NCBI RefSeq assembly: GCF_032191835.1
Contig: NC_083237.1
Coordinates: 18,166,001 to 18,230,000 of the forward strand
DNA length: 64,000 bases
DNA from: Heteronotia binoei
Lineage: Eukaryota
Direction of reading: 5' to 3'
In this document: positions 1 to 58,275 of the stretch, piece after piece
Numbering within the stretch: position 1 is the stretch's first letter
Layout: each line of letters starts with the position of its first letter
Position numbers and translations under genes: made by a program
The notes under the pieces: model-generated
The model's input: only the letters and a program-made list of their open reading frames with translations
Database searches by the model: none
What the model was told of the DNA's origin: nothing

Positions 1-3000
1 ACTTAAAATCTTAATATTAAAGGTACCCTTAATTAATAAGAACCAAAATTAATATCCTCCTCCCTCTTGTACTTAGTCATTATCAAAAATTGTCCAATGT
101 CCTTTTATTTTCCACTCTTTTTCTACGTATCTTCTGAACTTTTTCCACTCCATCTTAATTACTTCTAAATCATAGTATCTTAAGGTTCATGTTAACTTGC
201 CCATTTCACCCCCAAGTGTCATAACTTTTACAATCCAAACCCATTTCTCTGGTATTTTTTTCCTGCTTCCACAACCGCGCATACAACGTCCTAACTTTTT
301 CCACACCATCTTAATTACTTCTAAATCATAGTCTCTTATGGTTCTTGTTAACATGTCCATTTCACTCCATGTCATAACTTTTACAATCCAATCCCATTTC
401 TCTGATATTTTTTCTTGCTTCCACAACTGCACATACAACGTCCTAACTTTTTCCACTCCATCTTAATTACTTCTAAATCATAGTCTCTTAAGGTTCATGT
501 TAACTTGCCCATTTCACCCCAAGTGTCATAACTTTTACAATCCAAACCCATTTCTCTGGTATTTTTTTCCTGCTTCCACAACCGCGCATACAACGTCCTA
601 ACTTTTTCCACTCCATCTTAATTACTTCTAAATCATAGTCTCTTATGGTTCTTGTTAACATGTCCATTTCACTCCATGTCATAACTTTTACAATCCAATC
701 CCATTTCTCTGGTATTTTTTCTTGCTTCCACAACTGCACATACAACGTCCTAACTTTTTCCACTCCATCTTAATTACTTCTAAATCATAGTCTCTTAAGA
801 TTCATGTTAACTTGCCCATTTCACCCCCAAGTGTCATAACTTTTACAATCCAATCCCATTTCTCTGGTATTTTTTCTTGCTTCCACAACCGCGCATACAA
901 CGTCCTAACTTTTTCCACTCCATCTTAATTACTTCTAAATCATAGTCTCTTAAGGTTCATGTTAACTTGCCCATTTCACCCCAAGTGTCATAACTTTTAC
1001 AATCCAAACCCATTTCTCTGGTATTTTTTTCCTGCTTCCACAACCGCGCATACAACGTCCTAACTTTTTCCACTCCATCTTAATTACTTCTAAATCATAG
1101 TCTCTTATGGTTCTTGTTAACATGTCCATTTCACTCCATGTCATAACTTTTACAATCCAATCCCATTTCTCTGGTATTTTTTCTTGCTTCCACAACTGCA
1201 CATACAACGTCCTAACTTTTTCCACTCCATCTTAATTACTTCTAAATCATAGTCTCTTAAGATTCATGTTAACTTGCCCATTTCACCCCCAAGTGTCATA
1301 ACTTTTACAATCCAATCCCATTTCTCTGGTATTTTTTCTTGCTTCCACAACCGCGCATACAACGTCCTAACTTTTTCCACTCCATCTTAATTACTTCTAA
1401 ATCATAGTCTCAAGGTTCATGTTAACTTGCCCATTTCACCCCAAGTGTCATAACTTTTACAATCCAATCCCATTTCTCTGGTATTTTTTTTTTCCTGCTT
1501 CCACAACTGCACATACAACGTCCTAACTTTTTCCACTCCATCTTAATTACTTCTAAATCATAGTCTCTTAAGGTTCATGTTAACTTGCCCATTTCACCCC
1601 AAGTGTCATAACTTTTACAATCCAAACCCATTTCTCTGGTATTTTTTTCCTGCTTCCACAACTGCGTATACAACGTCCTAACTTTTTCCACACCATCTTA
1701 ATTACTTCTAAATCATAGTCTCTTAAGGTTCTTGTCAACATGTCCATTTCACTCCATGTCATAACTTTTACAATCCAATCCCATTTCTCTGGTATTTTTT
1801 AATGCTTCCACAACTGCGCATACAACGTCCTAACTTTTTCCACTCCATCTTAAATACTTCTAAATCATAGTCTCTTAAGGTTCATGTTAACTTGCCCATT
1901 TCACCCCAAGTGTCATAACTTTTACAATCCAAACCCATTTCTCTGGTATTTTTTTCCTGCTTCCACAACCGCGCATACAACGTCCTAACTTTTTCCACTC
2001 CATCTTAATTACTTCTAAATCATAGTCTCTTATGGTTCTTGTTAACATGTCCATTTCACTCCATGTCATAACTTTTACAATCCAATCCCATTTCTCTGGT
2101 ATTTTTTCTTGCTTCCACAACTGCACATACAACGTCCTAACTTTTTCCACTCCATCTTAATTACTTCTAAATCATAGTCTCTTAAGATTCATGTTAACTT
2201 GCCCATTTCACCCCCAAGTGTCATAACTTTTACAATCCAATCCCATTTCTCTGGTATTTTTTCTTGCTTCCACAACCGCGCATACAACGTCCTAACTTTT
2301 TCCACTCCATCTTAATTACTTCTAAATCATAGTCTCTTAAGGTTCATGTTAACTTGCCCATTTCACCCCAAGTGTCATAACTTTTACAATCCAAACCCAT
2401 TTCTCTGGTATTTTTTTCCTGCTTCCACAACCGCGCATACAACGTCCTAACTTTTTCCACTCCATCTTAATTACTTCTAAATCATAGTCTCTTATGGTTC
2501 TTGTTAACATGTCCATTTCACTCCATGTCATAACTTTTACAATCCAATCCCATTTCTCTGGTATTTTTTATTGCTTCCACAACTGCACATACAACGTCCT
2601 AACTTTTTCCACTCCATCTTAATTACTTCTAAATCATAGTCTCTTAAGATTCATGTTAACTTGCCCATTTCACCCCCAAGTGTCATAACTTTTACAATCC
2701 AATCCCATTTCTCTGGTATTTTTTCTTGCTTCCACAACCGCGCATACAACGTCCTAACTTTTTCCACTCCATCTTAATTACTTCTAAATCATAGTCTCAA
2801 GGTTCATGTTAACTTGCCCATTTCACCCCCAAGTGTCATAACTTTTACAATCCAATCCCATTTCTCTGGTATTTTTTTTTTCCTGCTTCCACAACTGCAC
2901 ATACAACGTCCTAACTTTTTCCACTCCATCTTAATTACTTCTAAATCATAGTCTCTTAAGGTTCATGTTAACTTGCCCATTTCACCCCAAGTGTCATAAC

Positions 3001-4285
3001 TTTTACAATCCAAACCCATTTCTCTGGTATTTTTTTCCTGCTTCCACAACTGCGTATACAACGTCCTAACTTTTTCCACACCATCTTAATTACTTCTAAA
3101 TCATAGTCTCTTAAGGTTCTTGTTAACATGTCCATTTCACTCCATGTCATAACTTTTACAATCCAATCCCATTTCTCTGGTATTTTTTAATGCTTCCACA
3201 ACTGCGCATACAACGTCCTAACTTTTTCCACTCCATCTTAAATACTTCTAAATCATAGTCTCTTAAGGTTCTTGTTAACTTGTCCATATCACCCGTCTCA
3301 TAACTTTTACAAGCCAATCCCATTTCTCTGGTATTTTTTCATGCTTCCACAACCGCGCATACAACGTCCTAACTTTTTCCACTCCATCTTAAATACTTCT
3401 AAATCATAGTCTCTTAAGGTTCTTGTTAACTTGTCCATATCACCCGTCTCATAACTTTTATAAGCCAATCCCATTTCTCTGGTATTTTTTCATGCTTCCA
3501 CAACAGCGCATACAACGTCCTAACTTTTTCCATTCCATCTTAATTACTTCTAAATCATAGTCTCTTAAGGTTCATGTTAACTTGGCCATTTCACTCCGTC
3601 TCATAACTTTTACAATACAGTCCCATTTCTCTGGTATTTTTTCATGCTTCCACAACTGCGCATACAACGTCCTAACTTTTTCCACTCCATCTTAAATACT
3701 TCTAAATCATAGGCTCTTAAGGTTCTTGTTAACTTGTCCATTTCACCATGTGTCATAACTTTTACAATCCAACCCCATTTCTCTGGTATTTTTTCATGCT
3801 TCCACAACTGCGCATACAACGTCCTAACTTTTTCCACTCCATCTTAAATACTTCTAAATCATAGGCTCTTAAGGTTCTTGTTAACTTGTCCATTTCACCA
3901 TGTGTCATAACTTTTACAATCCTACCCCATTTCTCTGGTATTTTTTCTTGCTTCCACAACTACGCATATTATGTCCTAGCAGCTGAAAGCAAGTATCAAA
4001 TTATAGTTCTATCTTCTTTTGGATTTTTTTTCCATTTGTAATCCCGACAGAAAAGTCTCTGCAACTTTCTTAAATTCGTATCCCAAGATCTTAGAAATTT
4101 CTTGTTGAATCATCCGCCAATACTTTTTTTTTGCCCTTTCACAAGTCCACCACATACGGTAGAAAGAACCTTCATGTTTTTTACATTTCCAACACCGGTC
4201 TGGCATCTTATTATTCATCTTTGCCAATGTCACCCAGTGAGTTGCATTTGAACACGAGTCTCCTGGTTTCTTGTTTAACACTTAA
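1..4285 (-). mobile_element. 5'-truncated L1-clade LINE (ORF2 C-terminus plus start of 3' UTR), internally expanded into a satellite
   Basis: 3977-4281(-) encodes DRCWKCKKHEGSFYRMWWTCERAKKKYWRMIQQEISKILGY, the L1 ORF2 C-terminal Cys-rich region. 73-136(-) encodes the terminal ..HWTIFDND*, matching the end of ORF 40548..41366 (..HWTIF*). Confidence 0.9.
137..3976. repeat. Tandem satellite, ~154-bp monomer x ~25, derived from L1 ORF2 C-terminal coding sequence, with a 9-mer (~1387 bp) higher-order repeat
   Basis: The motif cccatttctctg recurs at 240, 393, 547, 700, 855, 1009, 1162, 1317 and onward (153-155 bp spacing). The minus strand reads RTLYAQLWKQEKIPEKWDWIVKVMTWSEMDKLTRTLRDYDLEVFKMEWKK. 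Diagnostic variants recur 1387-1388 bp apart. Confidence 0.97.
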
Positions 4286-4387
4286 CCCGCTAGAGCCAGT
4301 GGAGTATTTTACATACTTTACTGTAGCCCCCCCCTTTTTTGTTTTTGTTTTTGCTGAGACTGAAATGTAAGAACAATGTTCTCAACT

Positions 4388-4532
4388 AGGATAGGCATTA
4401 GAGGACCACACTAGGATCCGGAACCATCAAGTTCAAATCCCGACTCTGCCGCGCAAGATTGCCGGTGACTTTGAGCCTATCACGCTCTCTTGCCTTAGCC
4501 TACCTGACAAGGTCACTTTTGCGAAGATAAAA
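4388..4532 (+). mobile_element. Old tRNA-derived CORE/MIR-like SINE remnant
   Basis: B-box-like gttcaaatccc, followed by cttagcctacctgacaagg...gaagataaaatgg, the MIR-type 3' part. Confidence 0.5.
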
Positions 4533-4773
4533 TGGTACCTATTGCACCATAGAGTTTTCCCTCCCAAATGGCTAGAACGTCCAGGGAAACCATAGAGTTT
4601 TCCCCAAAACACCTAGAGTGGTCACTGCTCAACATCACTGGTGCAATGATGTCACTTTCAGGTGGCGTCATTGTGCCAGCGACGTAGGGGGAGGTAATCC
4701 CCGCCAGCCCAATGTGGGTTGGGAACCTCCCAGGTGGGGAAACCTCCACCCGGACTGGGAGCTTGGCAGCCCT

Positions 4774-4971
4774 ATTTGCACATTAGGCCTCACACCCCTG
4801 ATGTAGCCAATCCTCCAAAAGCTTTAAAAGGGAAAGGTAATTCCCTGTGCACGCACCAGTCATTTCCGACTCAGGGCTCTTATGACAGGGTCTACGGTAA
4901 GCTCTTGGAAGGTTGGCGACATCAGGGGTGTGTGGCATATGCAAAGGAGTTCCTGCTACCAAAGAAGCCCT
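4774..4971. mobile_element. Palindromic hAT-type MITE with a short Sauria-SINE 3' fragment inserted in its loop
   Basis: Arms tttgcacattaggcc..cccctgatgtagccaatcctcc / ggaaggttggcgacatcaggggtg..atatgcaaaggag. The centre carries aaaggtaattccctgtgcacgcaccagtcatttccgactc, the same sequence as 60221-60257. Paralog at 26971-27171. Confidence 0.7.
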
Positions 4972-5294
4972 ACTGTTAAATAATTAAATTAGTTGGTGTC
5001 TCATGTCTTCATCTGGGGGATGCTGGGGCAAATATCTAAGTACCAGGGCTTGGTTCTAATGATGTGATCCTAAACAAAATGACTACTTTTAAAGTCCATT
5101 GTCTTAAATGGATTTAGAAGTTTTGTCTCTGCTCAAGATTACACCATAAATCTCCTAAACTTTGTAAAGTTGAACACAACTTCCTTGTATATCTGGATAA
5201 AAGAAACAAGGGAGAAACTAAGCATTCTAAAAGAGCATGCCATTTTATCCCTTCCCTGGATAGCCCTGGGAAGCCCAATCTCATTTGATCTCAT

Positions 5295-5632
5295 CCAAAG
5301 GGTGATGAACACATAGAGTTCACTGCCACAGGAGATGGTGGCAACTATAAGCATAGACAGCTTCAAGAGGGAATTAGATCAACATATGGATCAGAGGTCC
5401 ATCAGTGGCTATTAGCCACAGCGTATTGTTGGAACTCTCTGTCTGGGGCAGTGATGCCCTGTATTCTTGGTGCTTTGGGGGGCACTGTGGGAGGGCTTCT
5501 AGTAGTCCTGGAGCCACTGGTGGACCTCCTGATGGCACTTGGGGTTTTTTGGCCACTGTGTGACCCAGAGTGTAGGACTGGATGGGCCACTGGCCTGATC
5601 CAACATGACTTCTCTTATGTTCTTATGTTCTC
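5295..5632 (+). mobile_element. CR1 LINE 3' end fragment
   Basis: caaagggtgatgaacacatagagttcactgccacaggag...ggcctgatccaacatgacttctcttatgttcttatgttct; the same 3' UTR and tail as the RT-bearing CR1 at 54844-56366. Confidence 0.85.
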
Positions 5633-20489: not shown

Positions 20490-21458
20490 TCACTTTGTCG
20501 CTTTGCTCCTCAGGAATTTCCCCCTTCTCTTCCACAGCCTTCCCAGTGCCTCCTTCACCTGATCGTTCCGCAGACAATAAATCATGGGGTTGAGAAAAGG
20601 TGTGACAGCCGTGTAGAAGACCGTGACCACTTTAGTGACCGCTGAGGAATTCTCTCCAACTGGAGCTAAGTACATCCCAGCCACAGAGCCATAGAAAAGG
20701 GTCACCACCAGCAGATGGAAAGAGATAGTGGAGAAGGACTTCTTAAAACTGCCTTGGAAGGACCTTTTTGTAACGGTTAGAATCACAGCACCATAAGACA
20801 GCGAAACAAATAAGACATTGCAAAAAACCAACGCATTCATAAACACTTTGCAGACACTGGGGACAATTCCTAGTGGAGGGCAGGCAAGAGACAAAATGGG
20901 CACAGGGTCACACAGGAAGTGGTTGATGATTTGGGGGCCACAGAAGGACAACCTGGAGATCAAAATCACAGGGATAAGATACCACAGGAAGCCAAGGATC
21001 CAACAAGCAGCCACCAGAATGTAGCAAGAATCTGGGGACATAATTTGTGGATAGCGCAGAGGATGGCAGATAGCCATGTACCTATCCAAGGCCATGGCTG
21101 ACAGGAAGAAGCATTCAGTGGTGCCAAGTGAGAAGAAGACATAGAACTGAAGGAAGCAGACGTGAAAGGAGATGATTCCTTGAGGAGATGTCAAATCAAA
21201 CAGCATTCGGGGTACTGTGGCACTCACGTAACAGATCTCCAGCCAGGAGAAGTTGCTCAGCAGGATGTACATGGGAAGCCGGGACAAGTGGGTGTCTAGA
21301 ACCACCAGTGTGATGATGGTGATGTTCTCAGCTAAAGTGAGCATGTACAGAACGGCAAAAAAGATGAGGAGCAGGAACCGCGCCTGTTGCGCAACTCCAA
21401 ACCCCAGCAAAATGAACTCCTTCACTGTGGTCCCATTGATCAAGAGGCCCAACTCCAT
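20490..21458 (-). CDS. Olfactory receptor, class II (family-11-like), intact, 322 aa
   Basis: NGT, PMY, MALDRYMAICHPLRY, NHFLCD, KSFSTISFH, PFLNPMIYCLRN; ttccag acceptor before the ATG. Confidence 0.97.
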   Translation of the reverse strand: MELGLLINGTTVKEFILLGFGVAQQARFLLLIFFAVLYMLTLAENITIITLVVLDTHLSRLPMYILLSNFSWLEICYVSATVPRMLFDLTSPQGIISFHVCFLQFYVFFSLGTTECFFLSAMALDRYMAICHPLRYPQIMSPDSCYILVAACWILGFLWYLIPVILISRLSFCGPQIINHFLCDPVPILSLACPPLGIVPSVCKVFMNALVFCNVLFVSLSYGAVILTVTKRSFQGSFKKSFSTISFHLLVVTLFYGSVAGMYLAPVGENSSAVTKVVTVFYTAVTPFLNPMIYCLRNDQVKEALGRLWKRRGKFLRSKATK

Positions 21459-21609
21459 CTGGAATCAGAAAAGAACAATGTCTTTTTCCAGGACTTTTTT
21501 TTTTGTAGAAAAAGCACAGTGGGAACTCATTTGCATATTAGGACACACACCCCGATGTCACCATTGTTTCACACAGGGCTTTTTGGTAGAAAAAGCCCAG
21601 CAGGAACTA

Positions 21610-22219
21610 CCGTATTTTTCGGTCCATAAGGCGCTCTGGACCATAGGACGCACCTTCCTCCTGGGGGGTGATCCGCTGCCTCCGCCTCCAATCCCGGCGC
21701 TTCCCCCGTGCCTGCCTGCCTGGCTCCAGCTCTGCTTCCAGCAAGCACTGGGATCGCTCCACGCTGCCCCCACCGCAAACCCAGCGCTTCGCGAGTGATG
21801 GCTGCGGAGGGGGCAGAGTGCTTCCTCCGTGCCTGTCTGCCTGGCTCCAGCTCTGACGCTTACAGCAAGCGCCAGGATTGCTCCCTCCGCCCTCCGATCC
21901 CGGCGCTTTCTTTAAGCATCAGAGCTGGAGCCAGGCAGACAGGCACGGAGGAAGCACGTTGCCCCCTCCGCAGCCGGATCTCGCGAAGTGCTGGGTTTGC
22001 AGTGGGGGCAGTGTGGAGCGATCCCAGCACTTGCTGGAAGCAGAGCTGGAGCCAGGCAGGCAGGCGCGGGGGAAGCGCCGGGATCGGAGGCGAAGGCAGC
22101 GGATTGCCCCCCCCCAGAGGAAGGTACGACCTATCGTCCCTTCGCTCCATAAGACGCACACACTTTCCCCCACACTTTTTTTGGGGGGGAAAGTGAGTCT
22201 TATGGTCCAAAAAATACGG
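21610..22219. mobile_element. Tc1/mariner Tc2-like (CCGTATTT termini) non-autonomous transposon, nearly fully palindromic, GC/CpG-rich
   Basis: TIR ccgtatttttcggtccataag / cttatggtccaaaaaatacgg; TA TSD on both sides. The paralogous empty site is aacTAatttgcat at ~45977-45990. Confidence 0.85.
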
Positions 22220-22487
22220 TAATTTGCATATTATGCCACACCCCCGGACACCATGCAAGCAGGAATGGTGTTCCTATGCATTCCTGCTCAAAAAAGCCCT
22301 GTCTTTTTCAAATACGAAAAGCAGTTACTACTACCTGTTGATCTTTTCTGCTTAAAAGTAGAAAAGTGATGGGAAATACACGTTAAATTCAGAGGTTTGG
22401 AGTGGCAAGTGAGGGGGGCTGTATAAGACGACCCCCCAACATTTCCACTCAAAATATTTGTAGAAGACTCCCTTTATGCCCTGGAGA

Positions 22488-22772
22488 ACCAGTTTGGTGT
22501 AGTGGTTAAGTGTGTGGACTCTTATCTGGGACAACTGGGTTTGATTCCCCGCTCCCCCCCACTTGCACCTGCTGGAATGGCCTTGGGTCAGCCATAGCTA
22601 TCACAGAGGTTGTCCTCTAAAGGGCAGCTGCTGTGAAAGCCCTCTCAGCCCCACCCACCTCACAGGGTGTCTGTTGTGGCGGGGGGGGGAGGATATAGGA
22701 GATTGAAAGCTGCTCTGAGTCTCTGATGGGGTATAGGGTGGGGTATAAATCTGCAGTCCTCTTCTTCTTCTA
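22488..22772 (+). mobile_element. Squam3-like SINE
   Basis: gagaaccagtttggtgtagtggttaag...cttcttcttc. Paralog 46311-46592. Confidence 0.85.
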
Positions 22773-23179
22773 AAAGCTGCAGGGTGGCAACTGCGATAAG
22801 TGGCAATGGCATGGAAAAGAGTTACACAAAGCCGTTAGGACGTGCCCCAGCCCTAGTGTAAGCTGCAGGGAGGATCCCATTACAGCCCCCCTCACTCACT
22901 GAATGTAATCTTTGGATACAATATGTTGACATTGACTTCAATTACACTTACCTTATTTGCTTAGTTTCTGGACGCCGTCATTTTTACTGGAGGGTAGCGA
23001 TTTTATATTGTGATATATTAAATGTATTAAATGTATACTTTATTATTTTGAATGGTTATGTTGTAACCCACCCTGAGCCTGTTCATGGGAAGGGGCAGGC
23101 TAGAAATCAGATCAGATCAATCAAATCAGAGCATATTGTGGGTAAATGCAACCTTATAAGCAGATAGCACAGCTGCTTC

Positions 23180-23367
23180 CAGTGTCCCTTCTGAGTTAGT
23201 GGAAGCTAGCTCAGTTTTTTAACCTCCGGCTCACACGTTTTTGTCTGAGCTCATGGAAAATGGCCCCAGAGCAAACTAACGTATGCAGTCGCTCACAACT
23301 TTAATGCCAGTAGTTCACATAGTAGAATTTTTGCTCACAGGATCCCACAGCTTTAGAGGGAGCACTG
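23180..23367. mobile_element. hAT MITE (cagtgttccctctaagctg family, reverse orientation)
   Basis: cagtgtcccttctgag ... agctttagagggagcactg. Paralog 47002-47189. Confidence 0.7.
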
Positions 23368-23921
23368 GTACTAATCCTGTTTCAGTTCCCCCAAGTCAGC
23401 AACAGCCATTTAGAACTTTTGCTATCACAGACAACTCAACAGTTCTCTGCTTCAAAAATCTGCCAGTCTGAGGAGTGACGGTTTCCCAAAGGAGGAAAGG
23501 CCCTAATGGGAACATCTCCCATCCTAGCTTCCACTAATGAAGCACCTATTGACCATTCTGAACAATCAACAAATGGTCAGCCTCACAGAGAATGCTCTCC
23601 AGGGCTCATTTTCTAGCAGGAGTTCTTTTGTATATTAGGCCACAAACCCCTGATGTAGCCAATCCTCCAATGAGCTTCCAGGGCTCTTAGCACATTAAGC
23701 CTCTATTAAAAGGGCAGGATTTCTTTTCCTGTCCAGCTGACAACTTTATTCCAGAGTCCTATTAAAATTATGCTGCAACCCATAAAAAAGCAGTTAGGAA
23801 TCCTTGCATGGCATACCAGAGATCTTTGAGGATACTGTAGAGGTGTGCTCACCACACCCATGTAGTGACTTTGCATGGGTTGCACAAAGAATCTCTTTGC
23901 CTTGCCAGCCTCATACTAAGA

Positions 23922-24576
23922 AACACTATAAATAAACCACTGCATTTTTATGTTGCAAATAAATGCTTAAACAATTTATTTCATAATGATGCAATTATAT
24001 TATTATCATCACAAACCAAAATTCATTAAATGTCCATAGAAAAATCAAAAAGATACTTCACACCACTCTTATAAGGTAGCACTTTACAGTCCACTGTCTC
24101 AGTTCTCCTTTGCTTGAAAGACGCAGAGAGCCATTTGTGCAAGCTGCAAAGTAACATTGTATTGTAATGTGTGAGCAATTGCCTTTAGCACGGGTTTCAA
24201 AGCTAAACGAAAAGCGGCCAGCGGAAGGTGAACGAAACACAGAACTGAACCCAGGACCTGTGTAGCCACCGCACCTGCCAGACTTCAGTCTGCCACCCAT
24301 AGGAGGCATCATATACAAGCGCGGTGCTATCTACGTCTTTCAAGCAAAGGAGAACTGAGACAGTGGACTGCAAAGTGCTACCTTACAAGAGTGATGTGAA
24401 ATAACATTCTGATTTTGAAAGTACTACCTTACAAGAGGGGTGTGAAATAACTTTTTGATTTTCCTATGGACATTTAATGAATTTTGGTTTGTGATGGTAA
24501 TAATATAACTGCATCATTATGAAAGAAATTGTTTAAGCAATTGTTTAAGAACAGTGGTTTATTTCTAGTGTTTGCT
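23922..24576. mobile_element. Foldback element with ~200-bp inverted arms, unclassified
   Basis: 23925-24123 is the reverse complement of ~24335-24572 (e.g. cagtccactgtctcagttctcctttgcttgaaag / ctttcaagcaaaggagaactgagacagtggactg). Paralog ~48362-48975. Confidence 0.65.
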
Positions 24577-25130
24577 AATCAGTACACTGCAGTTTCTGGT
24601 TTGCCCAGCCTCATATTAAGATCAGGCCTGTCCATAATTTTATAATGAGCATTCCTCTGAAGAAGCCCAAATGTGTTCATATCCACCCTCCCAGCCCCCT
24701 TTGGTCTGGCCACAGTTCCCATTTCTATACCTTGGCAGCAGTCGAAACAGACGATCCATCCAGCAGAAGGCTCCCTGCAGCGTCTGGGGAAGAAGTACGT
24801 TCTTCTTTGTGCCTTACGGTGGTGCTCAATTCCTTTATTAATGGAGTGAAGGATGGGAAGCACCATATTTTTGCCTTGGCAGAAGAAAGCGTCAGTGTGA
24901 GTGTGTGCAAGGCAAGGCAAGGCAAGAGTACTGCTGCATAAGGAGGGCTGCAGTTTTAATCAGTCACCTGCATCAACTGCGGGATCATATATCCTGGAGG
25001 GCAAAGCCACTTTCCAACAAAAACAGCATCTCTTGGGACAACAGCTCCTCTCCCTCTTCATTATGGTGTGCGATATTTCTGAAAGACTTTCAGAGACAGA
25101 GTAGTGCTCACCACATAATGAATACCTTTG

Positions 25131-25161
25131 AGAAGAAGAAGAAGAAGAAGAAGAAGAAGAA

Positions 25162-25215
<54 letters not shown>

Positions 25216-25472
25216 ATTGGATTTATACCCTGCTCTCCACTCTGAATCTCAGAGCGGCTCACAATCTCCTTTACCTTCCTCCTCCACAACAGACACCCTG
25301 TGAGGTGGGTGGGGCTGAGAGGACTCTCACAGCAGCTATCCTTTCAAGGACAACCTCTGCGAGAGCTATGGCTGACCCAAGGCCATTCCAGCAGCTGCAA
25401 GTGGAGGAGTGGGGAATCAAACCCGGTTGTCCCAGATAAGAGCCCACACACTTAAGCACTACACCAAACTGG
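25131..25472 (-). mobile_element. Squam3-like SINE with expanded (GAA)n(GAT)n tail
   Basis: Reverse SINE ending cactacaccaaactgg; repeat at 25131-25215. The paralog at 49528-49818 has a short tail. Confidence 0.88.
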
Positions 25473-25925
25473 TTCAAGCAGCAAAGCACATCTATATCTT
25501 TTTGTACTCATTTGCTTGAAAATATGGATAACCCGCACTTCAGGTGGCTTGCCTTGGCAGCACTGAAACACCCCTCAGAACAGAATGTCAAAACACAACA
25601 ACTCCGCAAACAAGCACCAGCAATGGATGTCAGAAAGTCAAAGCGGAACAATCCAAAAACTGCATGAACATGAATAAAACTAAGAGCCAAAAAAATCATG
25701 TGGCAATAAAATCATGTGATAAAATAGCAAGAATTTGGAAACAAAGGAATAGAAGGCAGGGGAAAGGGGGGAGGGAGAGGAGGAGAAGGAGGTGACACCA
25801 GTCACAGTTCAACGAAATGCTTAGGAAATGAACCTAGCACCTAACTTCACAAAATGGTCACCAGGTGAACTTCTAGAAGGAGAGAATTGCAAAGCAGACT
25901 ACAGAGATCAGTTGTTCCCCTGGAG

Positions 25926-26135
25926 AAACATATGAAGCTGCCTTATACTGAGTCAGACCCTCAGTCCATCAAACTCAGTCTTGTCTACTCAGATTGGCAG
26001 TGGCTCTCCAGGTTCTCAAGCTGATGTTTTTCACACCTATTTGCCTGGACCCCTTTTAGTTGGAGATGCCGGGGATTGAACCTGGGGCCTTCTGCTTACC
26101 AAGCAGATCCTCTACCACTGAGACACCATCCCTCC
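25926..26135 (-). mobile_element. Squam2-like SINE
   Basis: acatatgaagctgccttatactgag...ggattgaacctgggg..taccactgag is the reverse complement of the 6990-7214 family. Confidence 0.75.
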
Positions 26136-26617
26136 CAAATGGCTGATTTGGAGGGTGAACTGTAAGGTATTTATATCTCCCTGGGGTCCCTTGCCAATCT
26201 CTGCCCCAAATGTCCAGGAATAGAGCTGGCATCCCTAACCTGAAAAGATATGGGAGGGAGGAAACAAGAGTGCCTCAGCCTGACTGACTCTTGCTTGATT
26301 TTAAAATCACTTTGAAATGAAGGCAGCATCCTTGAGGTGGCTATGAGGATGCCAACACATCTAGTTGGGCTCCAACATGCTGCCATTGCAAGTTTGAAGG
26401 TATGTTTGGGGAAAGAACCGGGTTTGATTCCCCACTGCTCCACTTGCAGCTGCTGGAATGGCCCAGGGTCAGCCATAGCTCTCGCAGAGGTTATCCTTGA
26501 AAGGGCAGCTTCTGTCACAGCTCTCTCAGCCCCACCCACTTCACAGGGTTGTTGTGGGGGAGGAAGATAAAGGAGATCATGAGCAGCTCTTTGCATTATA
26601 GCATTGATGTCTACCCA

Positions 26618-26852
26618 GAAGTGACATCATCATGCCGGTGACATTGTGTGCAGTTGCTCTAGGTGTTTCCGGGAAAACTCTATGCTTTTTTCAAATGCTC
26701 TAGCCATTTGGGAGGGGAAAACTCTATGGTACCTATTGCACCATAGAGTTTTCCCTCCCAAATGGCTAGAACGTCCGGGGAAACCATAGAGTTTTCCCCA
26801 AAACACCTAGAGTTTTCCTCAACATCACTATTATGATGATGTCACTTTCAGG
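26618..26852. mobile_element. Palindromic MITE-like element at the duplication junction
   Basis: ctctaggtgtttccgggaaaactctatg..tagccatttgggagggg / ccctcccaaatggcta..catagagttttccccaaaacacctagag, with apex atggtacctattgcaccat. Confidence 0.65.
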
Positions 26853-27794
26853 TGGCATCATTGTGCCAGCAACATAGAGGGAGGTAACCCTCGCTGGCCC
26901 AGTGTGGGCCAGCAGGTTAGGAACCTCCCAGGTGGGGAAACCTCCGCCCAGACCGGGGGCTTGGAAGCCCTATTTGCATATTAGGCCACACACCCCTGAT
27001 GTAGCCAATCCTCCAAAAGCTTTAAAAGGGAAAGGTAATCCCCTGTGCAAGCACCAGTCATTTCCGACTCAGGGCTCTTATTACAGGGCCTACTGTAAGC
27101 TCTTGGAGGATTGGCGACATCAGGGGTGTGTGGCATATGCAAAGGAGTTCTTGCTACCAAAAAAACCCTACTGTTTAAATAATTAAACTCGCTGGTGTCT
27201 CATGTCTTCATCTGGGGGATGCTGGGGCAAATATCTAAGAACCAGGGCTTGGTTCTAATGATGTGATCCTAAGCAAAAGGACTACTTTTAAAGTCCATTG
27301 TCTTAAACGGATCTAGAAGTTTTGTCTCTGTTCAAGATTACACCATAAATTTCCAAAACTTTGTAAAGTTGAACACAACTTCCTTGTAAATCTGAGTAAA
27401 AGTAACAAGGGGGAAATTAAGCATTCTAAAAGAGCATGCCATTTTATCCCTTCCCAGGATACCCCTGGGAAGCCCAATCTCATTTGATCTCACCCAAAGG
27501 GTGACGAACACATGAAATTCATTGCCACAGGAGATAGCGGCTACAAGCATAGCCAGCTTCAAGAGGGAATTGGATCAACATATCGTCCATCAGTGGCTAT
27601 TAGCCACAGTGTATTGTTGGAACTCTCTGTCTGGGGCAGTGATGCTCTGTATTCTTGGTGCTTGAAAGGGGGCACAGTGGGAGGCTTCTAATTGTCCTGG
27701 CCCCAATGGTGGACCTCCTAATGGCACTTGGGGTTTTCTAGCCACTGTGTGACCCAAGGGTTGGACTGGATGGGCCACTGGCCTGATCCAACAC

Positions 27795-38285: not shown

Positions 38286-40250
38286 AAAGAGAGGTATGGT
38301 TCTCCTGCAGTTTTTTGGGAGTTAAAAAACAGCCAAAGAATCTGGGTTCTAGGTCTTCATGTTGATAGAGCATGCGTCAACTCTTATGTGGCAGTAGGGA
38401 CAATTCTGTTCAAGCAAATTACCTTTATGCCTTAGAATATCCTAAATATCTCAACATTTACTTTGGTCTGTTTCAGCATTCTGCTTTCAGCTCAGGTGCA
38501 AAGCAAATATTTAGGTATCCCTTATATCTACTGTTTTGTGTTTTTGCCAACCAAATACTATGAAAGCAATTGAATATGTATGGAATGAACTGAGTGCAAT
38601 TTAATATGAATGGAACGCACTGCCGCTTGAGGTGGTGATGGCTGCCAGCGTAGACAGCTTCAAGAGGGGATTGGATAAGCATATGGAGCAGAGGTCAATC
38701 AGCCACAGCATATTGTTGGTACTTTCTGTCTGGGGTATTCTTGGTGCGGGGGGGAGGGCATAGTGGGAGGGCTTCTAGTGTCCTGGCCCCACTGATGGAC
38801 TTCCTGATGACGCCTGGTTTTTTTGGCCACTGTGTGACTACAGAGTGTTGGAATGGATGAGCCATTGGCCTGATTCAGCATGGCTTCTCTTATGTTCTTA
38901 CTTCATGGTTCGTTTTATTAGAGTATTTGTTCCCTGTATATTATCCAAATTTTATCTACTTTTCCAGTAAAATCTGATAAATTTTATATGTCCACTCTCC
39001 TTGTAGATTCCCTTAATTAAATCATACGTAAGGTAGCCAGATTTTGCACTTTAGCTCAGTTGATGAGGAAACAGATGTTTCAATTCTTTCATTAACTGCC
39101 TTGCATTTCTAACACTGGCGCTTAACAGGGTTATTGGTTTTGTATGCTGCTATCTAATTTAGCTTGTACCCTTAGGTTGGCTGATCTTGGATCATAATAA
39201 ATAAAACAAAATGAAATCTTCTGCTGGTTTAAGAAATAAAATATAATTGTTTGTTCTTTTATGTGGCAACCTCAGTTGTGTGATTTTTGTAGGCTCTATG
39301 AAATGCAATTAAAAACTTAGATGCAAAGATCAAATGTTATAGATCTTAAATTAGACCATGGTTGTAGACACTGTGTGCATACAGATGCACACATGTGTAC
39401 TTGAACCAGGGCAAAACTCCCCCCTCCCCACACTATTTCGGCATGAAAAACATTTTAGATATTTCATCACCTTTAAGATATATCACATTAACATTGTTTT
39501 ATTTTTTAAAAAACCTTAAGTTTTATGTTTGATCTGGTCCTCTGAGCAACAGAGGAGCTCATTCCAGAAAAAATATCCAAAGCAAACATTTCTGATTAAT
39601 ACAACTCCCTCCACCCAGTGACATTAACCAGAAAATGACAAATACAACAAACTGGCTGATAGATAGTGTGAGGTAGTGGTGAAATTGTTGGACAAAGAGT
39701 GAGGAGACCTGGGTTCAAGTCTCTCTGCTGCCATTCTATTCACTGAATGACCTTTGTCCAGTTACCTTCTTTTGCTCTCATTTTCCTTATACGTTATTGT
39801 GAAGATCAAATGGAGGAGAGATGATGGACACTGATGGACTGAGATCACTTCTGGTTTTGTGTCAGAAGTAACATCATGTATCAGCCTGATGCTGAATTCC
39901 ACCCCCTCCCCAATTTCCATTCACCAGCCTGTCAAGGGGTGGTAAGAAAGGGGATCCAGGCCAGGTGGTCTCCAAATATAGTGAAAGACCTGCCCTGCAA
40001 TGACTATCCTCACTGCAACAGAGCTCATTCTCCCACCCACATTCACCTATTGTGTTTATAATCTGTAGCACTGATGAAATCGGGGTGAGGAGAGGAGAAG
40101 AAGAAGGCAATGTGTACTGCTGTTTACAGGACTGGTATCATATATCTAAACCTGAACTAGGTCATAGAGTGCGGATCAACAAATCTACAAAATGGGCTAG
40201 GGACGACTGTGGGAGGGGATTTCTCTACAACCTGAAGGAAGTTCCAGGTT

Positions 40251-42393
40251 TGTGTTTTAACAATTTATTGATATCATATCGTTATACAACTTAGTTATTT
40301 CTTAATTATCTCAATATTAATCCGTATGACATTTCAATCCCCCCTCCCTCCAATGTTGTATTTTAACAATTCATTAATAACCTACGGTTACGATGTTTAG
40401 TTATATCTTTTCTATCCCTAACCCATATGATATTTTCAATCCCCCCTCCCTCCGTTATAAGACTTACCCCGAAGTTATATATTTAAATCCAAATATAAAG
40501 GTATCCCAAACCCATCAAAACACACTATCTTTTTCTTCTCATTCATATTAAAAGATTGTCCAATGTCTTTTTACGTTCCATTCTAACTCTATATATTTTT
40601 TAAATTTCTTCCACTCCTTTTTAAACACTTCCAGATCATAGTCTCTCAGAGTTCTTGTTAATTTATCCATCTCGCTCCACGATAAAACTTTCACAATCCA
40701 GTCCCATTTCTCTGGTATTTTTTCTTGTTTCCACAGCTGCGCATACAATGTCCTAGCAGCTGAGAGCAGATACCAAATTAAAGTCCTATCTTCTTTTGGA
40801 AATTTTTCTATTTGTAATCCTATCAGAAAGGTCTCTGCCACTTTCTTGAAGTCATAGCCCAAAATTTTAGAAATTTCTTGTTGTATCATCCGCCAAAAGT
40901 TTTTTGCTTTTTCACAGGTCCAAGCTTTTTGAAAGCCTTTATTTATGATTTTTCCTGCTATGTCCTTGGACCTTAGTTTCACAACGATATCTCTGGGTAG
41001 GCCTTTGTTTTTTGCATATGATGAGTTGACTCTATAGACACTGTCCAGCATACTTCTGAATTTTTCAGGATCCTCTTCTAAGTATTCAGCAATGATTTTC
41101 ACCATGTAGTCCATTAAATCTGTTTCCTCTCTTTCAGGTAGTCCTCTCAGACGCACTTGTGTTTCCATCGATCTGCAGTCGTGGATTGTAACCCTTTCTT
41201 GAAGTTTTAACAAAGTAGAGGCTTGTGTATCCACTTTCTCTTCAACTTGTTTAACTCTGTTTCCCAGTTCATCTTTAAAGCCCTCAATATCTTTCCTAAG
41301 ATCACCAATATCTTTTTTCAGTTCTTTTTTAAGGGCCAATAACATTTTATCCATTCCTTTCATCATCTTGGGTTCTAATACATCAAATTGATTTGCATCT
41401 TGCCAAAAGAATGAGCCCTTGATCGGGTTACTCTCTCTTCTGACATAAAAAACTCACCAAACCTAAAAAGGTCTCCAAATTAAAATTCAACACCAAGTCC
41501 AATAGCTTAGAGTGTGCTGTTTAAAATAAAGCTAATTTCATCTTCCTCCCATCTTCCTGGGCTGAGATATTGATTTTCAACAAATTTGGCTATTTTCCCC
41601 CATTTTAAAATGGCAATCGTTCTTTGTCTATGGTTACACAGAGTCTTAGAGAGGTCCTTCTTCAATCTTGGTTTTAATTCCTTCCTGGTTCAAGTGTAAC
41701 AACTTTGTAATCCTTGTAGGCTTCACCTCATTGGCCAGTAGGTTTTACTTCCCAGTTCAGGTTACTCAGTTCCCGTCTTTCAAATATCGCAGCTTTTGAA
41801 ATTTGCAGATAAGAATGTGGAGTGTTGAACAGAAGAGCCTGCGTCATCAACCTCAGGAATGTAAACAATTTCCTTCTTTTACAAATTCTATTTAAGTCTT
41901 TAGTTTCCAAAAGTTCAAATTTAGCAGGCAGTTATCTCCTTCTCTTTCGCTTCACTTCTATTTATTTTTAATTTTCAAGGCTATTCAGATTAGCTTAAAG
42001 AGTCTCAGGAGCAAAAACATTGAATAACGGTACCTTGTCAGCTTATGCTCTTTCACTTCGGCTTCTTAGTTAGTTATCTTGCAGTTATAAATCAGTCCTT
42101 GAAGTGCCTGGGTTCCGACAGGCTTAGGTCAATTTAATGGCTTTTTAATCCTTTGTAGATGATGGAAGACGCTCCCCCACCGTCGGATCTCAAAGCTCAA
42201 AAAAAGGGGGCTTCAGCCACCTAATTTCAGCTGAGATCAGCAACTAAAGGAGTTTAGGCGTCATCTTTGTCTAATCTCTGGCTGAGATGAGTGAGCAGGG
42301 CCCCCGAAAGGGTCTTTCTGCCCTAAACAAAGGAAAAAAAATCCCCCTTATTTAGAGGGCTGCAGCTCTGCCGTCAGCTCAGACCGGAAGTCC
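40251..42393 (-). mobile_element. Internally deleted mini-L1 (5' UTR, ORF1::ORF2-C-terminus fusion, 3' UTR), 2143 bp
   Basis: 14-bp TSD ggaagttccaggtt (40237-40250, 42394-42407); empty site in copy A at ~18410. 5' end ggacttccgg; 3' end aataaattgttaaaacacaa. Confidence 0.9.
40548..41366 (-). CDS. Chimeric ORF: L1 ORF1 (coiled coil + RRM) fused in frame to the last ~125 aa of ORF2
   Basis: ..QVRLRGLPEREETDL..LPRDIVVKLRSKDIAGKIINKGFQK|AWTCEKAKNFWRMIQQEISKILG..HWTIF*, with no internal stop over 272 aa. The native ATG is probably 41446 (MSEERVTRSR..), now separated by a 1-bp frameshift. Confidence 0.75.
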   Translation of the reverse strand: MMKGMDKMLLALKKELKKDIGDLRKDIEGFKDELGNRVKQVEEKVDTQASTLLKLQERVTIHDCRSMETQVRLRGLPEREETDLMDYMVKIIAEYLEEDPEKFRSMLDSVYRVNSSYAKNKGLPRDIVVKLRSKDIAGKIINKGFQKAWTCEKAKNFWRMIQQEISKILGYDFKKVAETFLIGLQIEKFPKEDRTLIWYLLSAARTLYAQLWKQEKIPEKWDWIVKVLSWSEMDKLTRTLRDYDLEVFKKEWKKFKKYIELEWNVKRHWTIF

Positions 42394-50800: not shown

Positions 50801-53800
50801 AAAGATCTATATCTAACACTCCGGGACTAATATAAGACCAATTTAAAATAAAAACAAAGGTCTAGATCCAGTTATATTATCTTAAACTAAGGAAGATAAA
50901 GGAGGGGGTAATTTTGGGACTAATAAAATTGGAGGAATAAGGATAAAAGTGGAAAAACAAACTTTGTTTTGAATACCTGCGGTCGGGTCAGACAACCCCC
51001 TCCGAAATAGAACTGCTGACTTGGTGAAGATATCACAGGAAATGGCATCACAGAAACAACATGAGACTTCTTAACCATTGAAAACGAGACTTCTTGGCAA
51101 GAGAGGAAGGAAATAGCCATTAAGAGAAGGGAAAACTGCAAGCCTCCCAGCCCTCTCTAGGACTTTAAATCATAGAGAAGCACTGGCGGCCATTAAAAGA
51201 AGGTCAAAATTTTAAAAATTAATCAAAAGAAAATGGGACTTTAAAAAATAGTGGAGCCGGCAGATATCATCATTAAAAAGTGAAATCTATTGGATTATAT
51301 GTTTTGAATCAATTTTGGTGCAGTTCAGGAGAAAAAAGGAAAAACTTTTTTAAAGGGACAGAAAAGTCTCGAGCGCCATTTTGAAGAAATAAAAACTTTT
51401 AAAAATTAATATTTGGACTTAGGAGCCTCTGGGAATGGTGATTTTAGGCTCATATAAAAGGGCATGCTCCAGTCTACAAGACTGTGTAATTGAAAATTGA
51501 ATTTGTGAGGTCAACATTGGCGCCTATTTAAACAATGGGCGGGCAGTGATGTCTATGCAAAAACCAGGAGCAAAGCAGATTCGAACGAGGGCTGGGTCAC
51601 TTGAAGAAGCAAAAATGGCTAAATGGCAGGAGGCAATTGATGCTATGGAAGCAAGACTGGTAAAAATAATAAAGGAGTCATTAATACAATGCAAGAAGGA
51701 AATAAAAAAAACAGAATCGAATGCAGAAGAAGTCAAAAAAGAAATTAAAAAAGAAATTGAAGATCTCAGAAAGGATTCTCAAGCAGTGTTAAAGAAAGTT
51801 CAGGAGGTGGAAGAAAAGGTGAAAGGCCAAGATTTAAGAATAGACACAGTGGATTCCACTATTCAAAAAATGCAGGAGAAAGCAGTACTACAAGATTGTA
51901 AAGTAATGGAAAATCAGATACGATTGAGAGGGGTGCCTGAATCTGTTGAGACTGATTTAAGGACATATATTATAAAAATCATTGCTGAATTTTTGGATGA
52001 AAACCCAGATGAAACCAACTATTTTTATGACTACATTTATAGGGCAAATTTGGATTATGCCAGAAAAAAACAAATTACCAAGAGATGTCGTAGTAAGATT
52101 TGTGACAAAAGATATGGTGGGGAAAATTTTGAGCAAACAATTTGAAAAAACATTGGAGGTGGATGGCAGCAGTGTAAGAATCATGAAAGAATTGCCAAGG
52201 AAAGTCATCAACGACAGGAGATTGCACAAAAAATTGCCAGAAAAGCTGAGAGAAAATGAAATGAGATACAGATGGATACTTCCAGAGGGTTTAAGTTTTG
52301 AATACAAAGGAAAGAGATTCACAATTACAAACACCCAGGAAATGACAAAGTTCTTGGGGGATTGTAAAGAATTTGGAGAAACAGATTAAGAATAAAAAAT
52401 CATTATGGATTACAAATTAATATCTTGAAATGTAAATGGACTAAATTCACCACAAAAAAGAAGGGCAACCTTTCATTGGACTGGGAAACAAAAATGTAAT
52501 ATAATTTGTCTACAAGAAGTACATATTAAGCAAATGGATTACAATTTTTTATGGAATAAACAACTTGGTATGGAATTTTGTTCATTGGCCAAGGAGAAAA
52601 AAGGGGCATGGTTTTTTATATTAAACAAGATTTAGACCCAAAATTGATTTTTTTTAAAGACGATAATGGCAGATATATTGCGGTGGAAGTGACGTTGAAT
52701 TATAAAAGAACTTAGTTCTTGGGAGTGTGTGCCCCAAATGGAGCAAAAGACTTCTTTTTTAAAGACATTATACAACAATTAGACCAAGTGGTGTATGAGC
52801 AAATTATGATAATGGGAGACTTTAATGGAACAGTTAAAAATATTTTGGACAGGTCTGGAAAAAAAAATAATGAAGGGAAGCTACCAAAGTCATTTTTTGA
52901 TTTGGTAAAACAAGAGAGTTTGGAAGACATTTGGAGGGAATTTAACCCCAAAGAATGTGATTATACTTTCTTTTCAGCAAGGCATAATTCTTTTTCGAGA
53001 ATTGATATGTTATGGATTACAAAGGATCTTGGACTATTAACAAAGAAAATAGAGATACTTTCTAAAATAGGGGCAGACTACAATCCAATAATGTGGTCTG
53101 CAAAACCAGTGAAAAAGACTATAATGGCGGATAAATGAAGATTTGCTACAGAAGCAGGAGGTAGTGGCGTCTCTGGAAAAGGAGACTAAATTCTTCTTTC
53201 AAATAAATGAAAAAGAAGACACTCAATTTCAAATTGTGTGGGGTGCCTATAAAGTGGTAATGAGGGGCATTTTAATTACATTGAATAGTAAAAAGAAAAG
53301 AGCGAAAAATAAGCAACTGCTGGACGTTCAGAAAGAAATTGGAATAAAGGAGAAGGAGCTTAAAAAATGACCTGGGAAAAAGAAAAATATAAGGGAGATT
53401 ACAATATTACAAAGCCAATTGAGACATTTGTTGAATAAAGAAGTGGAATGGAACTTAGAAAGACTTCAAAAGAAATCTTTTGAAGGAGCGAATTAACCTG
53501 GAAAATACTTGGCATGGCAAATGAAGAAAAAAAGGGAGAATAAAGTTATTAATAAAATTGTATCGGGAGGAAAGGACATTGTTGATCAGGAAGGAACTAA
53601 AAGAGAATTTTATAAATACTATGCCAAGCTATTTAAAAGTCAAAAGGTGGATAGAAAAAAAATTGATGCATATCTACAGAAAATTAAGGTAAATCCCTTA
53701 ACAGAAAATATGGAGAAGGTACTGAATGAACCAATCGAAAAAGGAGAAATAGAGGTGGCGATTAATTCAATGAAGATAGGAAAAGCACCTGGTCCAGATG

Positions 53801-54843
53801 GCTTTACGGTAAAATTTTATAAAGTCCTCGCGGAGGCGTCATTACCAAAACTTTAGAAATTGATGAATATAAGAATAGATGGGAAAATTCCTAATATATG
53901 GAAAGAAGCAGTAATTTTGTTGATACCAAAAGAAGACAGAGATGCTACAAATGTAAAAAACTATAGACCAATTTCATTACTTAACAATAATTATAAAATA
54001 TATGCCAGAATTTTAGCAGAACGCCTGAAACAGCATTTGAACAATTTTATTAAAGAGCAAACAGGATTTCTTCCCAGCAGGCAAATTAGAGATAATATCA
54101 GAACAGTTATAGATATTATTGAATATTATGAGAAAGATCCTGAAAAAGAAGAAGCATTATTTTTTGCTGACGCAGAGAAAGCATTTGACAATGTGCATTG
54201 GGACTTCATGTTTGCCGTGATAGAGAAACTGAGATTGGGAGAAGATTTTATAAGAATGGTGAAGGCGATATATACTGAACAACAAGCAAGGCTCTGTGTA
54301 AATGCAGATTTGACAGAAAAAATGATAATTAGTAAAGGAATAAGTCAAGGTTGCCCTCTATCTCCATTGATATTTATAATGACTTTAGAGGTTTTGCTAA
54401 TGCAAATTCAAGAAGATAAAGAGATAGAGGGACTGAAATTGAAAGGTTTTTCTTATAAATACAGAGCGTTTGCAGATGATGTAATGTTTATAAATGAAAA
54501 TCCCACTCATGTAAAACCACTGTTGCTTCGTAATATACAATATGGAGAATTGACAGGCTTTTATATAAACAAAGAAAAATCAAAAATGTTGTGCAAAAAA
54601 AATGTTAAAAAGTAAACAGGAAGAACTACAGAGGCTAACAGAGTGTGAAGTTACTTCCAAAGTAAAATATTTAGGTGTGGAAATAACAACAAAAAATCTG
54701 AACTTGTACAAAAATAATTATGAAAAGCTTTGGCGTAAGATCGATGGAGATTTGATAAAATGGAATAAGTTGAATTTGTCTATGCTGGGCAGAATTTCTG
54801 CAATCAAGATGAATGTCTTACCGGGAATTATGTTCCTGTTTCA

Positions 54844-56366: not shown

Positions 56367-57009
56367 GTTTCAAACAATTCCAATAGTGAAAGACAACAAA
56401 CAATTTAATAAATGGCAAAGGAAACTTTCAGAATTTGTATGGGTCAGGAAAAAACCAAGAATTAAAATGAAAATCTTGACTGATGCAAAAGAAAGGGGAG
56501 GATTTCAACTGCCTAATTTGAAGTTGTATCATGATGCAGTATGCCTGGTGTGGATTAAGGAATGGATGACATTACTAAATAGAAAATTACTAGCACTAGA
56601 AGGCCATGGAAATGTCTTTAGTTGGAATATTTACATGTATTATGGGAAAAATAAGATGGAAGGGTTTTTTCGCATCATTATATAAGAAGCAATCTGTTAA
56701 ATACTTGGCCAAAATATAAAAGATATGGGGATGAGAGGAAACCACTTTGGATTGTGCCAACAGAAGAAATAAAATTGTATTCAGATACTAAAGAAGATAA
56801 GTGGTTATCATATAAACAAGCTTTTAAAAATACATGGAGGAAAGGTGGAATTAAAATCGGCTGAAGAATTACAGTATAAATATAATTGGTTTCAATTGCA
56901 ACAAATTAAAGTTTGCTTGAACAGGACATCAAGAATGATGGAATAAGACAAGAACAAACAGAATTGGAGAGAATGCTGTTTGGTGAAAATGAAAAATTGA
57001 TTTCAAGAA

Positions 57010-57494
57010 CTTAAAGGTGCTGGTTATCACCTTTAAAGCCCTATATGGCTTGGGACCTGTCTACCTGAAGGACCGTCTTTCCTCGCATGTTCCCCAGAGA
57101 GTACTGAGGTCGGGAACACAAAATCTCCTTACTGTCCCTGGGCCGAAAGAAGCCCGCTTGAAATCCACCAGAGAAAGGGCTTTCTCTGTTATGGCCCCTA
57201 CATGGTGGAATCAGTTGCCGGAAGAGGTGAGGGCCCTGCGGGACCTTCTTCAGTTCCGCAGGGCCTGTAAGACGACCCTCTTCCGGCTAGCCTATACCTA
57301 GCTTGAGAACTTAATGCAACTTGCCAGATTTCTTTTATATATATTTCGAATATTTATTAATATTTATGGTTTTATCTGTTTTATCTGTTTTAAATGTTTA
57401 TTCCCTTATATGTTTAAATATTGCTTAATTTTATGCTGGATCTATTGTTGGAAGCCGCCCTGAGCCACCCGTGGGAAGGGCGGGATATAAATTC

Positions 57495-57525
<31 letters not shown>

Positions 57526-57526
57526 A
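57010..57526 (+). mobile_element. L2 LINE 3' end nested in L1 ORF2
   Basis: LVITFKALYGLGPVYLKDRL..APTWWNQLPEEVR..; (taaa)n tail. The L1 frame resumes after it (ENEKLISR..LLKWSTEDE). Confidence 0.9.
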
Positions 57527-58073: not shown

Positions 58074-58275
58074 GAACATATGAAGCTGCCTTATACTGAA
58101 TCAGACCTTCAATCCATCAAAGTCAGTCTTGTCTACTCACTGGCAGTGGCTCTCCAGAGTCTCAAGCTGAGGTTTTTTACACCTATTTGCCTGGACCCTT
58201 TTTAGTTGGAGATGCCGGGGATTGAACCTGGGGCCTTCTGTTTACCAAGAAGATCCTCTACCATTGAGACACCAT
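58074..58275 (-). mobile_element. Squam2-like SINE (paralog of 25926-26135)
   Basis: acatatgaagctgccttatactgaatcagacc...ggattgaacctgggg. Confidence 0.75.

Follow-up and report, generated by a model that had tools for sequence, protein, structure and literature searches.

Near the left edge of the window, the 64,000-nucleotide stretch of the Heteronotia binoei genome analyzed here (contig NC_083237.1, positions 18,166,001 to 18,230,000), lies a tandem array of 25 units that correspond to the 3' end of the second open reading frame (ORF2) of a LINE-1 (L1) retrotransposon. Our analysis makes it quite probable that this L1-derived array sits in the arm of a non-autonomous element of the Maverick/Polinton type which has spread to dozens of loci, and that the window contains one arm of a derivative of that element, hereafter the carrier. 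The array is a transposon-borne tandem repeat and not a satellite in the usual sense. Coordinates are window positions unless prefixed, those prefixed with C refer to chromosome contigs of H. binoei (the window being on C15), and features for which no strand is given were recorded without one. The 25-unit length, the nine-unit duplication and the half-element structure of the window copy are described as assembled, and the assembly is their sole source.

Tandem Repeats Finder reported a single array at 137-3968 (periods 155, 307 and 462; 24.9 copies; 93% matches). Splitting the sequence on the unit start resolved it into 25 head-to-tail units at 135-3978, beginning at 135, 291, ... 3824, each of 151-157 bp and each equivalent to the last ~51 codons of ORF2. 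A preliminary description, made from the letters of the window, had counted ~25 head-to-tail copies of 153-155 bp and had seen a variant unit recur after 2, 3, 4, 2, 3 and 4 units; the count stands with a slightly wider length range, and the recurrence is exactly as described. The variant is the 152-bp type B/B' (..ACATGTCCATTTCACTCCATG..), found at units 2, 4, 7, 11, 13, 16 and 20, and the complete order of unit types is A B / A B C A B C D A' B' / A B C A B C D A' B' / E E F G G. Pairwise identity among the units ranges from 85.5 to 100% with a median of 92.2%, while the three-unit block (A-B-C), which occurs four times inside the nine-unit blocks, is mutually 99.6-100% identical. The first copy of the nine-unit block (443-1829, units 3-11) includes the three-unit block twice; the second occupies 1830-3217 (units 12-20). 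The duplication was seen at no other locus examined, and its two copies are 99.71% identical, with 3 substitutions and 1 indel over 1,387 bp. These are the blocks that had been proposed as a 9-mer higher-order repeat (HOR) from private marks 1387-1388 bp apart, namely CTC--AAGG and a run of ten T residues (T10), both of which are located in units 9 and 18. The array therefore has higher-order organization in that multi-unit blocks are more alike than single units, with the nine-unit block in two copies only, and the hierarchical amplification suggested earlier is visible at the levels of the unit, the three-unit block and the nine-unit block. Toward the inner side, the divergent units 21-25 (3218-3978) belong to types common to arrays at C8:111.49 Mb, C1:144.6 Mb and C14:4.96 Mb. 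The array has no coding capacity, with stops in every frame and a unit length that cannot be divided by 3, and it is most likely functionless, a by-product dispersed by a transposon.

The repeat unit is, judging from its sequence, derived from L1 and specifically from the 3' end of ORF2, which it spans from ...ARTLYAQLWK... to ...EWKKF. Left of the array, on the minus strand, are the first part of the L1 3' untranslated region (UTR; 1-72), which extends left to about window position -135 and aligns to the 3' end of a single-copy L1 at 40250-40620, and the end of ORF2 (73-136), which reads ...EWKKFRRYVEKEWKIKGHWTIFDND* with its stop codon at 73-75 and is paralleled by the ORF2 end of the L1 at 40552-40922. 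On the right, also on the minus strand, a 5'-truncated piece of ORF2 (3977-~4270) covers the region of the C-x2-C...H...C motif, with R here at the His position, and translates as ...KMNNKMPDRCWKCKKHEGSFYRMWWTCERAKKKYW... / ...KMNNKMPDRCWKCKKHEGSFYRMWWTCERAKKKYWRMIQQEISKILGYEFKKVAETFLSGLQ.... This piece has 80% DNA identity to 57722-58083 and 40603-40922, and the homologous intact region matches residues 1068-1180 of human ORF2p. The minus-strand translation agrees with the earlier placement of ORF2 on the right of the array and of the ORF2 end and 3' UTR on the left. The L1 homology of the monomer is likewise borne out, with 77-83% DNA identity between array units and single-copy L1 3' ends elsewhere in the window, together with the human ORF2p matches. 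Two ordinary L1 3' ends in the window hold one unit each, at 40546-40922 in the same orientation and at 57722-58083 in the opposite one, and the first of these (40250-40922, minus strand), with the unit present once, provides a model of the progenitor state. A longer copy at 51546-58083 (plus strand), with ORF1, a reverse transcriptase and the C-terminal domain as well as a nested insertion and an N gap, established the family as L1. Its ORF2 matches RVT_1 in Pfam (E=4e-35) and the solved human LINE-1 ORF2p in both the reverse transcriptase (E=1.5e-48) and the C-terminal domain (residues 1068-1180, E=2e-8); it is because of these matches to the solved human protein that the family is identified as L1, and Pfam searches of the ORF2 C-terminal pieces and of ORF1 gave no useful result. 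Nested in this L1, at 54818-56218 on the minus strand, is a second reverse-transcriptase ORF of 466 aa, of the CR1/other LINE type, which is interrupted by an N run at 54913-55051.

The preliminary description had also called for a search of the genome with the monomer, and this search uncovered dispersed arrays, none larger than that of the window. A 305-bp probe of two units matches many chromosomes at 91-98% identity, often as plus/minus pairs 1.3-10 kb apart. A 21-mer across the unit-to-unit junction, which is diagnostic of the tandem array because it cannot exist in an ordinary L1, occurs 213 times in forward and 197 times in reverse orientation genome-wide (~410), compared with 0 for a control pattern. 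The first 100 listed junction matches make up 25 loci on C1-C6, of which 17 are inverted pairs. With the whole array as query, the longest array found was that of the window (3.84 kb), followed by arrays of 2.43 kb (16 units, four loci) and 2.15 kb; the array searches score best candidates only, and their counts are lower bounds. Array DNA totals about 65 kb and is dispersed, the loci seen being scattered along chromosome arms. The head-to-tail units of ~150 bp are those of a satellite; the high copy number in long homogeneous blocks that defines one is not found, with ~410 junctions and arrays of at most 3.84 kb, again as lower bounds. At C10:85094926-85176468, three arrays of 6-7 units lie on the same strand 36-45 kb apart, an arrangement suggestive of a carrier arm duplicated locally and not of an inverted pair.

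All of these arrays have one common junction, so the first tandem duplication happened once; it is this junction that provides the evidence for a single origin, and a maximum-likelihood tree of 197 units (with the two window L1 homologues, one of them truncated, as outgroups) was not used for it. The distribution also bears on the view taken in the preliminary description, that a stand-alone L1 insertion expanded in place and that the window captures a satellite at its birth. L1 sequence on both sides of the array would suit such an account, as would the fact that the nine-unit duplication and the unit type of units 9 and 18 are private to this locus. These are, however, the only private features: the types of 23 of the 25 window units (all types but one) are also present in arrays elsewhere, and no array exceeding 3.84 kb was seen. 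The same junction and unit types recur at dozens of loci, the junction at ~410 genome sites, and the L1 remnant and its surroundings belong to a multi-copy element with defined ends, so that remnant and array are cargo of transposon arms. Amplification in place within a single L1 copy is accordingly a very remote prospect.

The nature of the carrier is revealed by other loci, in which mirror-image arrays sit in long inverted arms that are 99.0-99.75% identical. Full-length copies measure 15,362-15,427 bp, and one of 15,389 bp consists of arms of 5,471 bp at 99.73% identity surrounding a centre of 4,446 bp. The ends read 5'-AGAAGA...TCTTCT-3', and the 6-bp target-site duplication is perfect in 13 of 14 full-length copies, the remaining copy matching at 5 of 6 positions. 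The arms are non-coding and filled with transposon debris; within them, the L1 remnant lies ~2.6-3.7 kb in from the carrier terminus with its L1 3' end facing outward, and the array has only 2-3 units in the full-length copies. As in foldback elements, the arms dominate the carrier (2 x 5,471 of 15,389 bp) and contain tandem repeats that vary from 2 to 25 units between copies. The carrier is a transposable element and not a segmental duplication or an assembly artefact. Two other sources of the inverted copies were considered and rejected: segmental duplication, on account of target-site duplications at unrelated sites, and twin-priming or other inverted dimers made by L1, on account of arms that run 2.6 kb past the L1 3' end and finish in transposon termini.

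In several carrier subfamilies most of the centre is gone, which leaves almost nothing but a palindrome, with 13-16 units per array. At C8:111490311-111502625 the arms, with 14 and 13 units, meet over an asymmetric centre of ~75 bp. This centre (C8:111496460-111496632; L036:4461-4633) comprises a ~75-bp single-copy stretch with one arm slightly longer than the other, a configuration characteristic of fold-back (snap-back) or of asymmetric deletion. An identical array of 16 units (unit types W X X U W W Y X U I Z a) is present at five loci (C14:4.96 Mb, C15:9.2 Mb, C13:43.2 Mb, C4:108.35 Mb and C8:66.59 Mb), which indicates that whole arrays are copied along with the element. The outer unit A, the three-unit block and the inner units F-G-...-J are common to the arrays of the window, of C8 and of C1:144.6 Mb, whose duplication patterns differ. 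In the palindromic copy at C1:144607292-144610479 the two arms hold 5 and 14 units, so identity between the arms is not maintained after insertion. Unit types that are shared yet shuffled, together with unequal arms, fit a mechanism in which unequal exchange or slippage changes the unit number of an inherited array.

The window copy is half of such an element. The L1 remnant, with adjoining stretches of 3.1 kb on the left and 0.26 kb on the right, consists of parts of the multi-copy element, and homology to the carrier is sharply bounded on the left at C15:18162737 (L035:2737), 3.26 kb before the window start, and on the right at 4535, giving a half-element of 7.8 kb. The left terminus reads ...AATAAATCATGGG/AGAAGATAAGG, and the corresponding empty site, ...AATAAATCATGGG/GTTGAGAAAAGG, is uninterrupted in both paralogous units of the host locus, at 20588/20589 and 44985/44986, from which it follows that the carrier insertion is younger than the local tandem duplication. 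On the right, the arm breaks inside a SINE-like sequence (4281-4535), where every other copy continues past 4535, and joins host flank (4536-5605) that is paralogous to 26726-27793. The break at 4535/4536 leads to the equivalent of position 26731 in the second host unit across an ATGG microhomology of 4 bp, and compared with that unit the host sequence lacks 6.1 kb corresponding to 20589-26725. An inverted partner arm was looked for in the window, in the 6 kb preceding it and, by genome searches, in the vicinity, and none was found. All of these features would be explained by a single deletion running from the inner arm through the centre and the opposite arm into the flank. The host locus itself (4536-49549 and L035:737-2736) has undergone tandem segmental duplication into three units, which repeat every ~19-24.5 kb and are 87-97% alike; the carrier is present in only one of the three.

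Published vertebrate Mavericks are characterized by terminal inverted repeats, by end motifs of the form (AGT)2//(ACT)2 or (AG)3//(CT)3 and by target-site duplications of 6 bp (PMC8097293). The AGAAGA end of the carrier is a trinucleotide starting with AG and repeated twice, differing from the published motifs. The terminus of the window copy, over its first 66 bp (90%) and bases 119-233 (88-91%), matches both ends of two elements of 16.3-16.5 kb (C14:43848613-43864875 and C6:96486937-96503454) as judged by match coordinates, and both elements enclose ORFs for a protein-primed DNA polymerase, PolB (PF03175). A second central ORF of the carrier has its sole database homologue in Gekko kuhli, where we located a homologous element of 14.6 kb (CM122935.1, L091:4228-18809) with arms of 5.7 kb at 99.67% identity. 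The Gekko element ends in AGTAGTAGT...ACTACTACT, with canonical AGTAGT, and is flanked by the target-site duplication TATGTG; ends and 6-bp duplication together are the published signature of vertebrate Mavericks (PMC8097293). Three ORFs of its centre recur in that of the Heteronotia element, namely an acidic one, a KEN-box one and one of ~175 aa (60% identity); a Bcl-2 ORF was not seen in the Gekko copy, and each of its arms has a tandem repeat of its own, of 253 bp x 2.4. On this evidence, the carrier is likely to be a non-autonomous element of the Maverick type; it does not qualify as an autonomous Maverick because all core genes are absent. Elements of the Maverick type that are poor in genes and have inverted arms of 5.5 kb are present in two gecko genera, and no description of them was found in the literature searched. 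Mavericks are abundant in the H. binoei genome, going by its PF03175 matches, which number at least 164, many of them in long open frames.

Several points weigh against this reading as a whole. Maverick core genes (PolB, integrase and capsid) are absent from the carrier, where Pfam searches of ORFs of at least 90 aa in a full copy recovered Bcl-2 only, and the link to Mavericks is made through size and target-site duplications and through the end motif and homology of the termini. Of these, the homology to the PolB-bearing elements was judged by coordinates, the end motif in H. binoei is (AGA)2 and not the published (AGT)2 or (AG)3, and the target-site duplications come from full-length copies and not from the window's own subfamily. 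The 25-unit length, the nine-unit duplication and the breakpoint at 4535 come from the assembly, and a longer array may exist elsewhere, since only best candidates were scored.

The missing polymerase, integrase and capsid genes and the unusual AGAAGA motif would also be expected if the carrier had no relation to Mavericks and were a foldback DNA transposon of another superfamily with 6-bp duplications, or a palindromic family of segmental duplications. A genome search with Peptidase_C5 (PF00770) for Maverick gene sets, also silent, might be added on that side, although it is uninformative because the controls were equally silent. The carrier termini nevertheless match those of 16-kb elements that bear PolB, the Gekko homologue has canonical AGTAGT ends, and segmental duplication would yield neither target-site duplications nor sharp common ends; we regard an origin outside the Mavericks as unlikely. 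Assembly error, in the form of mis-joined or collapsed repeats or a wrongly resolved palindrome, might in turn have produced the array length, the nine-unit duplication or the half-element. Tandem arrays and palindromes are hard to assemble. Eight sequencing runs matched small shares of the array and L1 stretch and none was listed for the breakpoint stretch; reads from four of the eight gave only contigs of 57-436 bp from related L1 and SINE copies, mostly 90-95% alike, none of which bridges 4535 or spans units. Yet the nine-unit copies differ at 4 positions, the junction at 4535 shows clean microhomology to sequence paralogous to the next unit, the only N gap of the window (54913-55051) is far from the array, and other loci have many different, internally consistent array lengths. 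An artefact thus seems improbable, more so than an origin outside the Mavericks, if less so than amplification in place.

For the Maverick-type carrier, we infer the following order of events. A 5'-truncated L1, ~0.7 kb without the array and consisting of the ORF2 end and 3' UTR, would have lodged in the long terminal inverted repeat of the carrier, where a piece of ~153 bp from the 3' end of ORF2 was presumably duplicated in tandem once. The carrier then spread to dozens of loci with the repeat in both arms, presumably mobilized in trans by autonomous Mavericks. A derivative would have inserted at C15:18162737 after the host duplication of ~19-24 kb, and a single deletion at 4535/4536 would subsequently have stripped the window copy of its centre and second arm, along with 6.1 kb of the host sequence. 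The array may have grown to 25 units at this locus or may already have grown before, with the nine-unit (1,387-bp) duplication by unequal exchange as the probable last step.

The carrier centre encodes a BCL2L10/NR13-like protein along with a few ORFs of no assigned family. In a 15.4-kb copy, the Bcl-2-family ORF (PF00452, E=1e-21; C3:164524587-164525165, L037:6088-6666) is intact and intronless, and its product is 98% identical to H. binoei proteins annotated as "anti-apoptotic protein NR13-like" and 72% identical to H. binoei BCL2L10. At least 9 NR13-like proteins (73-98% identity to the carrier ORF) are annotated in H. binoei besides BCL2L10. The carrier element thus seems to have taken up an anti-apoptotic gene of its host and to have multiplied it. 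The element lengths of 15.4 kb in Heteronotia and 14.6 kb in Gekko, compared with 16.3-16.5 kb for the PolB-bearing relatives, invite the speculation that carriers are what a Maverick virus-like element left behind in the host genome in the form of defective "snap-back" genomes. Such genomes would have kept only the ends for replication and integration, had their length rebuilt by giant inverted arms and captured the BCL2L10/NR13-like gene, while arms and array were amplified as stuffer under a length constraint such as capsid packaging rather than by drift. We consider this scenario unlikely and offer it only as a conjecture.

The locus and its relatives provide a clean and datable case in which a coding piece of a retrotransposon became a tandem repeat that was then spread and diversified by a second, unrelated mobile element. 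The intermediates coexist in one genome, from one unit in ordinary L1s through 2-3 in full carriers and 13-16 in foldback derivatives to 25 with a fresh nine-unit duplication in the window. In one carrier lineage an intact BCL2L10-like ORF is present many times over. Carriers create large perfect palindromes, which are potential sources of hairpins, double-stranded RNA and rearrangements, and the half-element of the window with its 6.1-kb flanking deletion may be the scar of a palindrome rearrangement.

Among systems already described, the one that comes nearest is the Drosophila virilis foldback transposon Tetris, which contains TIR-220 repeats (Dias et al. 2014, PMC4079207). Like the carrier, Tetris is non-autonomous and consists mostly of long terminal inverted repeats with internal tandem repeats of variable number, and both have kilobase-size arrays arising from the internal repeats, many rearranged forms and termini in common with another element. 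Tetris differs in being a cut-and-paste foldback element of an insect, with a 220-bp unit that is not known to be derived from a retrotransposon. With vertebrate Mavericks/Polintons (Barreat & Katzourakis 2021, PMC8097293) the carrier shares 6-bp duplications, terminal inverted repeats, a short repeated end motif starting with AG (here AGAAGA), a length of ~15-16 kb and termini homologous to those of elements in its own genome that bear PolB. Intact Mavericks, in contrast, have eight conserved genes, whereas the carrier has none of the eight and instead devotes 71% of its length to 5.5-kb arms of transposon debris. Satellites that arose from segments of transposons and that transposons dispersed are listed in reviews (PMC12628747; also PMC9659126), and the array resembles them in both respects, a sub-segment of a transposon having become tandem and having been dispersed by a transposon. 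It also resembles alpha-satellite HORs in that its multi-unit blocks are 99.6-100% alike and neighbouring units about 92%. Unlike satellites and HORs, it amounts to ~410 junctions in arrays of at most 3.8 kb, with the nine-unit block in two copies only and no sign of a block at centromeres or in heterochromatin. What is new here, relative to all of these systems, is a unit taken from the coding sequence of L1 ORF2, a vehicle of the Maverick type with 5.5-kb arms, and the preservation of a full series of intermediates.

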